A stretch of 64,000 nucleotides of DNA, from assembly GCA_037447605.1 (NCBI GenBank), contig CM074805.1, positions 4,125,361 through 4,189,360 on the forward strand, read 5' to 3'. The notes under the pieces were generated by a model. It was not told the DNA's origin. It was given only the letters and a program-made list of their open reading frames with translations, and did not search any database. Source of the DNA: Zygnema circumcarinatum SAG 698-1b. Lineage: Eukaryota > Plantae > Zygnematophyceae. Within the stretch, counting starts at the first letter, position 1. Every line of letters starts with the position of its first letter. The translations under genes were made by a program, and so were the position numbers. Below, piece by piece: positions 7,099-46,519 of the stretch.

Positions 7099-9531
7099 AT
7101 GAGTAATTTGAAGGTTACAGATGGTGGAAAATCTGATAAAAAACATGAAATACTGGAGCAAGTGCCTAACTCTGCGCAGAAGCCACGAGGCCTTACCGCC
7201 TTCCGATTCATACGAGGACTTTTATTTGCTCTCCAATTGATCATCAGCGCCTTTGTTCATCTCACCATTCTGGGCCCCCTCGCAGTTCTCCTTCTCCGGC
7301 CCTTCAATTTGATTCTTTATCGAAGAACTGCAAGTTTTTTTTTCGGAAACTGGCTGTTATTGCCCGCCTGGAACTCTGAAAAGGTATTTAGAAAATTCTG
7401 TCCACTTAGTGTATTTTGTGGATGAGGCGTAGAAATTTTCTGTTTGTTGGTCTTATATGAGACTTTGTTTTTTATGCGACAAGTTTTTCCAAATTTTCTT
7501 GTTTTCTTCGACTTCTTTCCTCTCTTCTACTGTCGATTTCTTTCTTTCTTTCGTTCTTTCTTGTTCGACGTTCTTAAAATTGCAAGGATAAAACCGATAT
7601 TGCAAGGTAGAAACTGTGCATCTGCAGAGTTCTGTTGCCCATCACAAACTGGGCATGCATGGATGCATGAGTGCTGGATTGCTTGGACGCATGGGTGCAT
7701 GGACTCATGGAAGCAAGGATGCATGGATGCATCACAGATTCATGGGCTGCTTTGCAGCGCGCAGCGAAAGGCTGTGGGCGAGGCCTGCTTTGAGCCTGCC
7801 TCTCAAATCGTCCTCCTAAATCATAAGCCCGTCCACATTCACGTTGATACAGACGAACGCCCTTACAAAACAGTTTTTCCTATAGCAGGCAAAGTTGTCA
7901 TATAATCCTCGGCCCATTGATTCAATTTTCTTGTGCGACCGCTGGTTTATGTGGAAGCAGGTGAATGGAACGAAAATTGTTTTCACTGGGGAGAATGTAC
8001 CACCAAAAGAACGAGTTTTGCTTATATGCAATCATCGCACAGAACTGGACTGGATGTATCTTTGGAACTTTGCACTGCGTAAGGTGAGTCCTTATGTTTA
8101 TCCTTCTTTATTGACCTCAAGCTGCTGGACAAAAGGTTGTCGTGCATCGGTATCGGTAATCGGTATTCATCGGTACCTCTCGTCTTTGGGATGTTGTGGG
8201 CAGGGCCGGACAGGGTTCGTTAAATATGCCCTGAAGAGCAGTTTCCGCAATGTGCCCCTGCTTGGCTGGGCGTTTCATATCTTGGAATTCTTGACACTAG
8301 AGAGGCGGTGGGAGAAGGACCGAACTACAATAAAGGCTAAGCTATCGACCTTTCAAGATCCGGCCGATCCTCTCTGGCTCATTATCTTCCCAGAAGGCAC
8401 CGACTTCACGTGAGATGCTTGACAATCTCGACATACATCCGAGATGAGATTCTTAGGAACTGTTTGATCGTCATTTTGAATCATATGCGTGTTTCTTTCA
8501 CCAAAGGCAGGGCAGTTTCTAGTAGCTGAACAATTCGTGGGAGGAAAATATAGACTCTACTTCAGCAATTGAGCCAAAAGGTATGTCTTTTGTTTATCCA
8601 ATTGTTTATCCGAGCCTCTTTAATGTTGCGTAAGCGTGGCACATGGTACAGGGAGGCAAAGAGCGTTAAAAGCCGCGCGTTTGCTGCGGATCATCATCTT
8701 CCCAAGCTCAAGCACACACTGCTCCCTCACTGCAGGGGGTTTTTTGCAGCTCTGCAGAGCTTGCGGATGTCTATTGACGCAGGTGAGCGAGAGAGACTGC
8801 ACTTCGTGGGTGGTCTTTGCAAGTGCCAGTCACACAACAATGCATCTAAAACCTTCGCTTAGTTGGAAGAAAATGGGAGAGTTACGGTTACTAAGGCACT
8901 GCAATCCGAAGTTATGAAAGAAGGGGCTGCTGGCTGCACCACTCACGTTTGCTTTTGAACGCAGTGTATCTTTTTCCCGCGCAGTGTATCTTTTTCCTTC
9001 CCTTTTGGAGCCATAATCCACTGATGACTGAATGACAAGGGGCCTTTGGTTGGAATAGTGTATGACGTGACGATTGCCTACAAATACGGCCGTCCAAATC
9101 TTGCCGATGCTGTCTTTGGAACTGGTCCTGAGGAGGTTCATTTTCACATAGAAAGACTTCCACTCGATACCTTGCCGCACACAGAGGAGGAAGCAAAATT
9201 GTGGATGTACAAGTGCTTTGAGATGAAGGATCAGCTGCTTGATGAGTTTTTTAAAGAGGGAAGCTTCCCAGGTCCTGTTGGGGAGGAGGAGCTAAGCACG
9301 CTCGCCGGTATTGTGGCTCATGCCTATTGGGCTGCATCGTCCCTTATAGCGATGTGGCTCATGTTTACTAAGGCCATTTGGCTAGCTCCATATATGGGCT
9401 TGGGCGCCCTTTTCCTGGCGGCAATCACGTACTGCAATTGGCTGCCAGGGTCCGCCATTGAAGCTCTCGAGCCTCACACAAAGGAGTTGGCAAAGCATGC
9501 GGCCGAACAGGCGGAGGAACTGTCCAAGTAG
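7099..9531 (+). CDS. LPAT4/5: 1-acyl-sn-glycerol-3-phosphate acyltransferase, LPAT4/LPAT5 (LCLAT1-like) subfamily; 5 exons (7099-7383, 7961-8083, 8204-8409, 8652-8782, 9059-9531)
   Basis: PlsC motifs NHRTELDWMY (NHx4D), KYALKSSFRNVPLLGWAFHILEF, WLIIFPEGTDFT and VYDVTIAYK; N- and C-terminal hydrophobic segments; phase-consistent GT-AG junctions. Confidence 0.93.
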
Positions 9532-32689: not shown

Positions 32690-39911
<7,222 letters not shown>

Positions 39912-40916
39912 TGGTTTCCATTTGCAGTGGGCGGCCTCTCATGTCCCTCATTATGTTGTGAATAGCACAGTTGTTGGTTCTAGGCGTACATAGCTCTTTA
40001 GGACTTGTCGACAACTGTACAATCCCTTAGAACTTGTACAAATTGTGCATATTTTCTTTTGCGAACAAAAATGTATATACGATTTTGAGACGGTATTTCT
40101 GCGATTGTAGTAGTCACGAAAAACCGTGATGCCTAGTGCGAATTGCAGACGACTGATTTCTGCGAATTTGGGACTTCATAAGAAGCTGGAACTGTACCGT
40201 AATGGTTTGAGAAGAAAATCAAGTCTTCTACGGACAGCAGAGAGAGAAAAAGAGAGGAACGGGAGAGAGAGAGAGCGAGAGAGAGAGTGGGAAAGAGAGA
40301 GAGTCAGCGAGAGCAAGAGAGGAGGTTTTACTTGCTTTCGTCAATTCAGTTATGCCAATGGAAAATAATTGCTTTTTGGCTGGAAGACTTTCAAACCACT
40401 TTTCATCATCAGAGTGACCCAACTTCGACTCATGCATTTTATTTTGAAACAAAATGGCGAAGTCAAACAAAATAAAAAAAGGTTGAATGAATGGACAGAT
40501 CAACCAATGACAAAAAGATTCTAAGAAGAAAGCAATCGATCGTACGGAGGTCGTACCAATCTCCCACCCCTCTCCTTCCCTGCGCCCTCTTCTGTTTCAG
40601 TTCCTGTAACTACAGAAGGTCGACTAACCGAATTGACAACTGTACATGGAGACTCTCCATGCAGAGAAGCTCTCTTATCTGGTCACGAATTTGAGAGCCT
40701 GCTTCCCTAAAAGGTCCTCTTAACTTTCAAAAAGAAGCAGCCAGCCTCACAAACAACGCTTGGACTGAACTGCAATCGCATGTAACTTCAGAACCACCGA
40801 ATGTGTGCTCTCCTTCCACTGCCTTCACATCTCCAAGTTTGACGTTTTTTTCGTCTCGGGCCAAACTTCTACAATGCAGGATTGTAGAAGACAAACAATA
40901 AAAAATATTTTATAAC

Positions 40917-42753
40917 TCAACTCGCGGTCGTCGTCCTCCTTCTCTTGGTGGCTTTGAGCCCCCCCATCGTCCCCCCTCCTGCCGCACCCTCCTCCGCCGC
41001 TGCACTGTTCTGCAGCTGCGCCTTCACTTCCTCCAAGTGATCAACTTCATCGGAAAGTTCCGATGTCTTCCTCGTCAAATTCACAATGGCGTCATGCATC
41101 ACCTCCTCGCCGTCTTCCATCTTCGCAATTTGATCCAACAGCTCCTTCCTCTCACGAAGCAAAACTGCAAGCTCGTTCTTCTCTTCGATCGCTTTCAAGA
41201 GGGCCTGTCAGGACGTGCCATATCACATCACTCCAGTCAATCTCAAGCAAAGACCTCAAAACAATTTGTACAACTTGAACCGTAACAGAGGAGGAGAAAG
41301 TGCAGTAAGGATTGCGAAAAGAGCAGATTGAAAGGTCAGATTGTTATGTGTAAGGAAACAAAGAATCCAAAACAAAACTCACTGAGGATCGATGTCATTT
41401 GAAACCAACAGCCTGCAAACTCTAGTGCTTATTTCCTGCGTTTCCTTGAAGCAGCTGCGAGTCCCATCATGAAGCTCACCTTGTTGGACTCCGCCTCCAC
41501 CCTCTCGAGCTTCCTCGCCTCCTCCTCCATCGCCGCCTTCATCTTGGTCGCTTCTGATAAGCGCCCTTCCGCCGCTGCATGGGTCTGCTGTGCGGCCCGC
41601 CACGTGCCCTCCACAAAGGCCCTGTTCCCCTCCTCGACCGCCGCCGCCTCCCTCTTCAACTGCTCGACTTCAGAGCGCGCGCAGGCACTCTTGCGAACCC
41701 TCTCCATCTGCACAACGCTTTCATCGTACTCCGCTTCCACCCGCAGCATCTGCTCCGCCTTCATCTCCAACTACAGAAAGAACAGACACAATCAAAAGTA
41801 AAATTTAGCTACAATATCAATTTCAAGTTGATGGATTGAGGCACCATTCCCTTCCACTTCAACGATTTGGATGCTCCCCATCTGCTTCTTTCTGCCCTCG
41901 CTTTCTTCCCGGATGTCTACTGCTAGCTGTATGCAAACAAACACAATAGCTGAACAAAGTGGGAGAGGGAGCGAGGGGAGAGAGGGAAGGAGAGAGGGAG
42001 AGTGGAGGGGAAAGAGACAAAGAACGTGGGAGAGGGAGAAAGAGCGGGTGTTACCTCTTTTTTCAAAGCATCCAGATGCGCTTCAAAAAAGGACTTGTTC
42101 TCCATCTCATAGTACAATCGATCCTCCACTGAGCTCCCATTGCAGTCCATAGGCTCCTCCTCAGCGCAGTTCAAATCGTCCAAAAGTCGCATTGGGGGAA
42201 AAGGATGAATCCATCGCCGCGGCCATTTCGTTCTAAGCGGCGTCGGAAGCTCCTCCGTCATATCTCCCGCCTTCCTCTTTGCAGGGAGACGCTTCTCACC
42301 TTCCCCCGCCTCTCCCTCTTGCCCAATCTCGACTTTCTCCCCTCCGCCCTCCACTTCATCTCTCTCTACCTCCCTCCTCGATTCACTTCCCTCCCTTTCC
42401 CCGTTCTCTCCCTCTCCCTCTCCCTCTCCCTCTCCGGATCCCTCCCACCCTATTTCTGCGGCCGCCATGGCCGCCTTTCCTACCTCCACACGTAGTGGCG
42501 TGGGCGGGAACAGCCCATTCTCCCACTCACTGAGCGCATCTTCAAAATGCTCTTCCTGAGAGAGAGGCTCCCCAGCCGACACTTCCACTCTAGCCTCGTT
42601 CATCATCTCGAAAGCAGCGCTTCTCAATGTCTCCGATTTCTCTTCTTTCCGGAAGCTGAGTCCTCCAAGAAGCCAGCTCCAAGCACGGGCAGAGACTCCT
42701 CCTGCATGAGGAGCAGCGAAGGTGAGGGACTCCTGGAATCTCAAAGTCGCCAT
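40917..42753 (-). CDS. Unrecognised acidic coiled-coil protein, left palindrome copy (4 exons, about 450-460 aa)
   Basis: Mirror image of the right copy with intact ATG, GT-AG junctions and stop. It differs at a few codons (RVEVSAG vs REVVAAG; RKTSEL vs RKRSEL). Confidence 0.75.
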
Positions 42754-42949
42754 GGCTTGGAGCTTTCCAAGAACTTCAAAACCCTAACTGATAGGCTTGG
42801 TTCCACTCGTAACCCTGCCCTACCCCCCTCAGTTTCTCCCAAAGGCTGGAGCGCCAGAGAGAGACTGAGAGAGGAGAAGAGAGTGACCACGAGAGAGTCC
42901 TCACCAGGGTCCTGTCAATAGGCGATCCGCCCTTCCCAGACACGCGGAG

Positions 42950-43232
42950 CTCCAATGAGAACGAGCCACGTGGTAATAACTGTTGGCATGGCGCGTCGTG
43001 ATTGGTTTACGTTCTGTACCTGACACTGCACTTGCGAATCTTTCACATGGATCATGACGACAGTACAGGACTACATGGATCCCCGCCCACGGTGGATTGC
43101 AGATACAGTAGAAAGTGGCACGCGCCACACGCGCGGATTGATTCGCAATCGTGGTCACAGTTTTACCAAACTTACACCAATCGCGGAGCGCCACGATAGC
43201 AGTTCATTCCACGTGGTGCGTTCTTATTGGAT
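42950..43232. promoter_or_regulatory. Candidate shared bidirectional promoter at the palindrome centre with mirrored G-box and CCAAT boxes
   Basis: CCACGTGG at about 42966 and 43209; CCAAT/ATTGG at about 42952, 43001, 43177 and 43226. These are retained in both arms although neighbouring bases differ. Confidence 0.5.
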
Positions 43233-43452
43233 CTCCGCATGTCTGGGAAGGGCGCATCGCCTATTGACAGGACCCCCGTGAGGACTCTCACGTGGTCAAC
43301 CTCCCTCTCGGACCTCTCACGCGCTCTGGTCTCTCTTTCTCTCTCTCTCTGGCGCTCCAGCCTTTGGGAGAAACTGAGGGCGGTAGGGCAGGGTTACGAG
43401 AGGCACCAGGCATATCAGTTAGGGTTTTTAATTTCTTGGAAAGCTCCAAGCC

Positions 43453-45289
43453 ATGGCGACTTTGAGATTCCAGGAGTCCCTCACCTTCGCTGCTCCTCAT
43501 GCAGGAGGAGTCTCTGCCCGTGCTTGGAGCTGGCTTCTTGGAGGACTCAGCTTCCGCAAAGAAGAGAAATCGGAGACATTGAGAAGCGCTGCTTTCGAGA
43601 TGATGAACGAGGCCAGAGAGGTAGTGGCGGCTGGGGAGCCTCTCTCTCAGGAAGAGCATTTTGAAGATGCGCTCAGTGAGTGGGAGAATGGGCTGTTCCC
43701 GCCCACGCCACTACGTGTGGAGGTAGGAAAGGCGGCCATGGCGGCCGCAGAAATAGGGTGGGAGGGATCCGGAGAGGGAGAGGGAGAGGGAGAGGGAGAG
43801 AACGGGGAAAGGGAGGGAAGTGAATCGAGGAGGGAGGTAGAGAGAGATGAAGTGGAGGGCGGAGGGGAGAAAGTCGAGATTGGGCAAGAGGGAGAGGCGG
43901 GGGAAGGTGAGAAGCGTCTCCCTGCAAAGAGGAAGGCGGGAGATATGACGGAGGAGCTTCCGACGCCGCTTAGAACGAAATGGCCGCGGCGATGGATTCA
44001 TCCTTTTCCCCCAATGCGACTTTTGGACGATTTGAACTGCGCTGAGGAGGAGCCTATGGACTGCAATGGGAGCTCAGTGGAGGATCGATTGTACTATGAG
44101 ATGGAGAACAAGTCCTTTTTTGAAGCGCATCTGGATGCTTTGAAAAAAGAGGTAACACCCGCTCTTTCTCCCTCTCCCACGTTCTTTGTCTCTTTCCCCT
44201 CCACTCTCCCTCTCTCCTTCCCTCTCTCCCCTCGCTCCCTCTCCCACTTTGTTCAGCTATTGTGTTTGTTTGCATACAGCTAGCAGTAGACATCCGGGAA
44301 GAAAGCGAGGGCAGAAAGAAGCAGATGGGGAGCATCCAAATCGTTGAAGTGGAAGGGAATGGTGCCTCAATCCATCAACTTGAAATTGATATTGTAGCTA
44401 AATTTTACTTTTGATTGTGTCTGTTCTTTCTGTAGTTGGAGATGAAGGCGGAGCAGATGCTGCGGGTGGAAGCGGAGTACGATGAAAGCGTTGTGCAGAT
44501 GGAGAGGGTTCGCAAGAGTGCCTGCGCGCGCTCTGAAGTCGAGCAGTTGAAGAGGGAGGCGGCGGCGGTCGAGGAGGGGAACAGGGCCTTTGTGGAGGGC
44601 ACGTGGCGGGCCGCACAGCAGACCCATGCAGCGGCGGAAGGGCGCTTATCAGAAGCGACCAAGATGAAGGCGGCGATGGAGGAGGAGGCGAGGAAGCTCG
44701 AGAGGGTGGAGGCGGAGTCCAACAAGGTGAGCTTCATGATGGGACTCGCAGCTGCTTCAAGGAAACGCAGGAAATAAGCACTAGAGTTTGCAGGCTGTTG
44801 GTTTCAAATGACATCGATCCTCAGTGAGTTTTGTTTTGGATTCTTTGTTTCCTTACACATAACAATCTGACCTTTCAATCTGCTCTTTTCGCAATCCTTA
44901 CTGCACTTTCTCCTCCTCTGTTACGGTTCAAGTTGTACAAATTGTTTTGAGGTCTTTGCTTGAGATTGACTGGAGTGATGTGATATGGCACGTCCTGACA
45001 GGCCCTCTTGAAAGCGATCGAAGAGAAGAACGAGCTTGCAGTTTTGCTTCGTGAGAGGAAGGAGCTGTTGGATCAAATTGCGAAGATGGAAGACGGCGAG
45101 GAGGTGATGCATGACGCCATTGTGAATTTGACGAGGAAGAGATCGGAACTTTCCGATGAAGTTGATCACTTGGAGGAAGTGAAGGCGCAGCTGCAGAACA
45201 GTGCAGCGGCGGAGGAGGGTGCGGCAGGAGGGGGGACGATGGGGGGACTCAAAGCCACCAAGAGAAGGAGAACGACGACCGCGAGTTGA
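43453..45289 (+). CDS. Unrecognised acidic coiled-coil protein, right palindrome copy (exons 43453-44151, 44280-44348 or -44393, 44436-44726, 45002-45289)
   Basis: ATG in GCCATGG context; phase-0 GT-AG junctions (GAG|GTAACA, TACAG|CTA, TGTAG|TTG, AAG|GTGAGC, GACAG|GCC); E/K/A-rich heptad-like C-terminal half; basic PAKRKA and KATKRRR motifs. The exon 2 donor is ambiguous. Confidence 0.75.
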
Positions 45290-46519
45290 GTTAAAAAATA
45301 TTTTTTATTGTTTGTCTTCTACAATCCTGCATTGTAGAAGTTTGGCCCGAGACGAAAAAAACGTCAAACTTGGAGATGTGAAGGCAGTGGAAGGAGAGCA
45401 CACATTCGGTGGTTCTGAAGTTACATGCGATTGCAGTTCAGTCCAAGCGTTGTTTGTGAGGCTGGCTGCTTCTTTTTGAAAGTTAAGAGGACCTTTTAGG
45501 GAAGCAGGCTCTCCACTTTGTGACGAGATAAGAGAGCTTCTCTGCAAGGAGAGTCTCCATGTACAGTTGCCAGTTCGGTCATTCGTCCTTCTGTAGATAT
45601 AGGACAGGAAGTCAGTTCGGTTAATCGTCCTCTTGTAGATACAGGAACTGAAACAGAAGAGGGCGCAGGGAAGGAGAGGGGTGGGAGATTGGTACGACCT
45701 CCGTACGATCGATTCCTTTCTTCTTAGAATTTTTTTGTCATTGGTTGATCTGTCCATTCATTCAACCTTTTTTTATTTTGTTTTACTTTGCCATTTTATT
45801 TCAAAATAAAATGCATGTGTCGAAGTTGGGTCAATCTGATTATGAAAAGTTGTTTGTAAGTCTTCCAGCCAAAAAGCAATGATTTTCCATTGGCATAACT
45901 GAATTTACAAAGAAAGTAATACCTCCTCTCTCACTCTGTCTTTGTCTCTCTCTCTCTCTCCCACACTCTCTCTCGCTCTCTCTCTCTCTCCCACACTCTC
46001 TCGCTCCTCTCTCTTACTCTCTGCTGTCCGTAGCAGACTTGATTTTCTTCTCAAATCATTACGGTACATTTCCAGCTACTTATGAAGTCCCAAATTCGCA
46101 GAAAAATATGTCAGGACTCGAACCCAGGACCTGGGCCTCACTGACGGCTCTCCGGATTCCCTACTGCAAGTACGATCTGAATGGCGTCTTGGATGTATCG
46201 CGATATATATAAATCGCGTATGTCTATATCGCGATACGATAGTTGGCGGGTTGGATAGTTGAGGGTGCAGGGTTTTTGAAGGCCTCTCTCCGCCCGCCCT
46301 GGCAGCCTTCTGCTTGCATCCTCTCCCGCTTGCAAGGCCTTGGGAGCGAGAGAGGGAGAGAGAGAGTGAGAGAGAGAGAGAGACATAGGGACGTAAATAG
46401 TGCTTGTGATCATTTGTGTCTTGCCGAGCAAGATTTCGAGAGAAAAATAGAGGGAGAGAGAGGAAGGGGGAGAGAAAGGAAGGGGTAGGGAACGACAAAG
46501 AAGAGGAGAGGGAAAAGAG

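Follow-up and report, generated by a model that had tools for sequence, protein, structure and literature searches.

The window analysed here (the whole 64,000-nucleotide stretch of DNA from Zygnema circumcarinatum SAG 698-1b) carries two copies of a three-exon gene, arranged head-to-head and transcribed outward from the centre of a 5.9-kb palindrome. The stretch reads as eukaryotic DNA, with long CT/GA microsatellites and spliced genes, and shows no bacterial signals. The comparison of the right arm with the reverse-complemented left arm by blastn yielded a single gapped alignment of 2939 columns with 94.3% identity and 8 gap openings; the arms are paralogues lying collinearly on one chromosome. 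A repeat search returned the inverted arms as 40602-42873 and 43333-45604 at 99% identity, with more diverged segments extending outward, and the palindrome was the only long repeat within the 64-kb window. Both arms lose their homology abruptly behind a shared motif, and the sequences beyond it are unrelated. No residual palindromy was found in the spacer, which had a self-complementarity score of 18, against a mean of 18.3 after shuffling. The features of the locus are as follows:

40157-43013, minus strand: left arm of the palindrome (blastn arm alignment), with the left gene copy
43014-43168, no strand: unique spacer of 155 bp, outside the arm alignment and at the centre of the common divergent promoter region
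43169-46104, plus strand: right arm of the palindrome (blastn arm alignment), with the right gene copy
43453-44151 (right, plus strand) and 42055-42753 (left, minus strand): predicted exon 1, 233 codons, from the open reading frame and sequence reading; right ATG at 43453, donor GT at 44152
44152-44435 (right, plus strand) and 41771-42054 (left, minus strand): predicted intron 1, 284 bp, GT..AG with a good polypyrimidine tract, identical in the two arms
44436-44726 (right, plus strand) and 41480-41770 (left, minus strand): predicted exon 2, 97 codons, coiled-coil-like
44727-45001 (right, plus strand) and 41205-41479 (left, minus strand): predicted intron 2, 275 bp, GT..AG with an in-frame TGA (44996-44998) just before the acceptor, identical in the two arms
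45002-45289 (right, plus strand) and 40917-41204 (left, minus strand): predicted exon 3, 95 codons and stop, from the open reading frame and tblastn
43614-43627, plus strand (mirror 42579-42592): four clustered substitutions within 14 bp, abutting the core on its 5' side (43614, 43619, 43622 and 43627; one synonymous, three replacement)
43628-45140, plus strand: identical core of the right arm, 1513 bp, with 0 mismatches and 0 indels in the ungapped comparison (coordinate sum 86206)
41066-42578, minus strand: left-arm counterpart of the identical core (coordinate sum 86206)
45295-45513, plus strand (mirror 40693-40911): second perfect run of the ungapped comparison, 219 bp, 3' UTR-like
45569-45610, plus strand: 42-bp unit specific to the right arm, in tandem with 45611-45652 (79% identity between the two)

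The splice model is based on the sequence alone, namely on the GT..AG boundaries, the reading frame and the contrast between the GC3 of the exons (0.58, 0.84 and 0.66 for exons 1, 2 and 3) and the GC content of the introns (0.47 and 0.43 for introns 1 and 2), and this contrast supports the exon and intron assignment. Both introns are in phase 0. A tblastn search with the exon 1 translation recovered both copies (100% and 98.7%), and these two were the only copies of the gene in the window. The predicted protein is acidic and partly of low complexity (Gly-Glu repeats), with coiled-coil-like stretches in exons 2-3 and a basic C-terminal patch. Homology searches were carried out with the exon translations one by one rather than with the joined spliced protein. 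Pfam gave nothing above threshold for any of the exon translations, only weak coiled-coil noise, and sequence searches of the PDB with all three exons gave nothing with E < 0.3. An exhaustive phmmer search with exon 1 against 1.84 billion representatives returned 0 matches, and the ESM Atlas gave no usable match for the protein. A word search with exon 1 found no match, possibly swamped by low-complexity Gly-Glu words; the length window of this search put a protein of about 425 aa out of range for the short exons 2 and 3. Judging by its predicted translation, the gene pair encodes an orphan acidic coiled-coil protein without detectable relatives.

We considered whether the palindrome could be a fold-back read chimera or the product of a haplotig mis-join, and rejected both. 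Real indels separate the arms (42, 14, 12 and 6 bp, plus smaller ones), the unique spacer has no structure, and both outer ends continue without a gap into different unique sequences, the nearest run of N (35657-35666) being 4.5 kb from the left end. The palindrome itself is therefore real. The largest indel corresponds to the 42-bp unit of the right arm, where a tandem duplication of about 40 bp (45570-45645) had been announced for this arm only; the single unit of the left arm is 86% identical to 45611-45652 and 76% identical to 45569-45610.

The original prediction described a core without differences from 43630 to 45139, mirrored at 41067-42576, with no indels and a constant coordinate sum of 86206. 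The ungapped comparison of the arms recovered this core as one single perfect run at that scale, in the register of the arms, and displaced its boundaries by no more than 2 bp (43628-45140 and 41066-42578); the sum holds over all 1513 bp, and the claimed identity of the introns was borne out. The core extends from codon 59 of exon 1, through exon 2 and both introns (559 bp), to 139 nt into exon 3, and its edges are sharp. The codon mismatches expected at 43613-43628 are the four clustered substitutions listed above, which distinguish the residues Ala-Arg-Glu-Val-Val-Ala in the right copy from Ala-Arg-Val-Glu-Val-Ser in the left copy. On the other side, the AGA/ACA difference (Arg/Thr) foreseen at about 45140 is located at 45141 and is the first mismatch 3' of the core. 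Within the exons, the two copies can be told apart at 43557, 43614-43627, 45141, 45247 and 45271. The substitutions and indels said to mark the promoter and the 3' flank were also found: the 5' flank contains many substitutions and indels of 1-14 bp, with arm-specific indels at 43299-43332 among them, and the outer 3' zones differ by 5.5-10%, plus indels. Counted zone by zone, the substitutions between the arms are distributed as follows:

outer part of the 5' flank: 13.7%
inner part of the 5' flank: 8.3%
remainder of exon 1, 5' of the core: 2.9% (5/175)
core: 0/1513
remainder of exon 3, 3' of the core: 2.0% (3/149)
45290-45513: 0.45% (1/224)
successive outward zones beyond 45513: 7.6%, 5.5% and 10.1%, plus indels

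Divergence is thus not uniform along the arms, with 0/1513 in the core and 2-14% elsewhere, the near-invariant segment at 45290-45513 apart. When 89 difference events were placed randomly over 2940 columns, none of 20,000 permutations left a difference-free stretch of more than 436 bp (mean of the longest stretch, 163), against the 1513 bp observed, and the analytic bound for a run of at least 1513 bp arising by chance is about 1e-26. The core also differs from its adjacent shoulders (P = 8e-6, or 4e-4 if the cluster of four substitutions is counted as one event), and the 95% upper limit of its divergence is 0.2%. The sequence itself shows the palindrome, the exact identity of the core, the sharpness of its edges and the statistical excess.

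In raw counts, the arms fall into three tiers, with a divergence of 9.1% in the outer zones, 1.6% in the shoulders and 0 in the core (shoulders versus outer zones, P = 1e-9). A model of nested older tracts was nevertheless not adopted: most of the shoulder sequence is coding, and, with a synonymous divergence (5.3%) that matches the divergence further out, its low overall divergence is largely accounted for by ordinary purifying selection. The introns, with a GC content of 0.43-0.47 against 0.475 for the window, are not enriched, so no trace of repeated GC-biased conversion is seen in them; for GC3, the core has 0.68 and the shoulders 0.60.

The pattern is best explained by a recent, presumably non-reciprocal gene conversion from arm to arm, of at most 1513 bp, and we consider this reading likely. 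The original prediction had offered either a recent conversion tract within the palindrome or an inversion by crossover between the arms. The first part is favoured by the sharp edges, the lack of indels and the identity of the introns and of about 200 synonymous sites, whereas crossover alone, which swaps arm sequences and does not homogenise them, did not hold as an alternative. That the event was single, when it took place and how the repair proceeded are inferred from this pattern. The three-exon orphan gene would first have been duplicated, long ago, in head-to-head inverted orientation, giving arms of about 2.9 kb around a spacer of 155 bp. A break or gap in one arm would later have been repaired with the other arm as template, an inverted template accessible through folding back in cis or through the sister chromatid, and copying would probably have proceeded by synthesis-dependent strand annealing. 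Up to 1513 bp, the whole stretch between codon 59 of exon 1 and nucleotide 139 of exon 3 with both introns, would have been overwritten. Either arm could have been the donor. The maximum tract is bounded by the differences retained at 43627 and 45141, and, given a prior divergence of about 5%, the tract is probably not much shorter than 1513 bp. With less than 0.2% divergence in the core and about 5-10% at neutral sites outside it, the event would fall within roughly the last 2-4% of the age of the arms, that is, of the time since they last shared sequence.

Polishing is known to be weak on near-identical inverted repeats, and slightly different cores could have been written as identical if reads from the two arms were pooled in the consensus or in short-read polishing, or if a collapsed contig was used twice. 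The assembly is scaffolded and contains a gap (10 N at 35657-35666), and an independent sequence of the locus was not found, either by exact look-ups of contigs encoding the 276-aa arm-specific ORFs (both copies) or a 479-aa neighbouring ORF, or by an exact 30-mer scan of metagenome contigs (0 matches). However, a (CT)n array of 661 bp was assembled through, which suggests a long-read assembly and hence reads able to span the 5.9-kb palindrome; the shoulders, diverged by 1-3%, were kept apart right up to the edges of the core, and there is no other long repeat in the window with such a collapse. We therefore regard an artefact as unlikely. Moreover, pooling requires reads that could not be assigned to an arm, so the core would in truth still have to be much less diverged than the flanks (5-10%). 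The heterogeneity along the arms and the case for conversion are robust in either event, and only the exact zero is not. A different rival is extreme purifying selection on the whole core, introns included, for example through an embedded functional RNA or regulatory element. Non-coding constraint may exist at this locus, as the 3' UTR-like segment 45290-45513 is also near-invariant (1/224). However, the coding sequence abutting the core, the most conservative yardstick for the divergence to be expected within it, has pS = 0.053 and pN = 0.016 (omega about 0.3), indicating that both copies are under ordinary purifying selection, and selection on the core would require zero change at about 761 near-neutral sites (202 synonymous and 559 intronic), the probability of which is 9e-19 at this pS. 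Selection thus cannot explain the identity of the core. The claim that it would not hold introns identical was upheld by the comparison of the introns with the non-coding flanks (0/559 versus 71/1016 differences, Fisher P = 1.5e-14). No Rfam family was found anywhere in the window, and an orphan protein with low-complexity acidic stretches and no detectable relatives does not have an ultra-conserved profile, so we give this explanation almost no credence.

Intrachromosomal crossover can take place between inverted repeats as long and as similar as these, and a reciprocal exchange could have inverted the spacer together with the inner segments of the arms, the core being the accompanying repaired heteroduplex. 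The data fit conversion with and without crossover alike. However, crossover alone exchanges arm sequence without homogenising the arms, so conversion would still be needed and crossover would be only an accompaniment. Neither a recombinase gene nor short repeats at the boundaries nor a second orientation was seen, and inversion of 155 bp of spacer between two divergent copies of one gene would have no obvious effect. A programmed invertible switch was looked for in the same context: no recombinase domain was detected in 18 long ORFs of the window (at least 153 aa, the longest included), and the spacer is without structure. We consider the crossover explanation very improbable.

Arm-to-arm conversion would place the locus among well-documented cases. 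Gene conversion including introns is well documented in closely spaced inverted paralogues, and conversion tracts often take in introns (reviewed in PMC3966223). In the hsp16 inverted modules of Caenorhabditis elegans, the coding sequence and intron are near-identical and the flanks diverged, and the adjacent paralogues col-12 and col-13 have ORFs that are 99.5% identical, intron included, within diverged flanks; both cases have been ascribed to gene conversion (PMC3966223). The Zygnema pair resembles hsp16 and col-12/col-13 in its near-identical coding sequence and introns inside diverged flanks. However, the Zygnema tract begins within exon 1 and ends within exon 3, not at module borders. 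It also differs from these examples in belonging to another organism and to an unrelated orphan gene. The palindromes of mammalian Y and X chromosomes (PMC8600007; 10.1101/800185; PMC8327919; PMC8981503) and those of willow sex chromosomes (PMC7023750) are defined by conversion from arm to arm. The Zygnema palindrome resembles the mammalian ones in bearing genes around a unique spacer, and the mammalian arms are homogenised by intrachromosomal non-reciprocal copying. However, their arms exceed 10 kb and are more than 99% identical throughout, with frequent GC-biased conversion, whereas the arms described here are 2.9 kb long and 94% identical overall, with one sharply bounded tract and introns without GC enrichment. 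An assignment to the large sex-chromosome type (arms of more than 8-10 kb, whole-arm identity above 99%) was therefore rejected, as the arms are 94.3% identical and only the central 1.5 kb is identical. On this reading, the locus is an ordinary instance of interlocus (ectopic) gene conversion between inverted paralogues that lie close together, a well-known process.

The gene copies are not a recent duplication, and it is annotation and dating that are chiefly affected: since the copies are old, identity-based dating of this pair, or of similar ones in this genome, would be badly wrong inside the tract. For streptophyte algae, the locus adds a clean case of arm-to-arm conversion with sharp limits, no longer than 1.5 kb and with introns included, and we know of no measurements of conversion tract length in these algae. 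It is also a cheap place for checking assembly accuracy, and opens no new question.

Two smaller features lie next to the core. The cluster at 43614-43627 holds 4 of the 9 substitutions of the shoulders (P about 0.01, a rough hand estimate), and no alternative donor for it was found in the window at up to 3 mismatches; it may be a repair-linked multi-nucleotide mutation, or due to chance. The 219-bp run at 45295-45513 is separated from the core by 154 bp with 4 differences; it may have arisen as a further patch of the same, discontinuous conversion or by an event of its own, or it may be UTR under constraint. One broader idea would connect both: in this alga, presumably haploid when vegetative and hence without a homologue for repair, small gene-bearing palindromes might throughout the genome offer built-in templates for repair in cis, by which young or orphan genes stay intact, much as on the Y chromosome. 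If this were true, the 219-bp patch would correspond to patchy heteroduplex repair and the cluster of four substitutions to repair-associated mutagenesis, although we consider so general a role quite improbable.

Several further observations concern the arms and their surroundings. The substitutions between the arms are rich in transversions (30 transitions versus 49 transversions), which is unusual for nuclear DNA; the excess may stem partly from the alignment in low-complexity flanks. Shorter AG/CT tracts are present at the outer ends of the arms (40239-40321 and 45926-46022), and the nearly perfect (CT)n microsatellite of 661 bp (38428-39088) lies 1 kb outside the left arm. Directly past the homology of the right arm, the minus strand of 46105-46180 resembles by eye the T-arm of a tRNA (GGTTCGAGTCC). 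ARAGORN and Rfam detected no tRNA, SINE or other family at this outer boundary, and the segment is possibly a SINE remnant, on the strength of this visual resemblance only. Elsewhere in the window, an acyltransferase gene with exons at 7895-8410 and 9046-9528 on the plus strand (Pfam PF01553, 1.5e-15, and PF16076, 6e-17) was the sole recognisable family among the 18 long ORFs. Finally, the G-box core CCACGTGG occurs at mirror positions of the two promoter arms (42966-42973 and 43209-43216), about 215-240 bp upstream of each ATG. It has been kept in both arms despite 14-18% divergence around it, and is likely a cis-element common to both divergent promoters.
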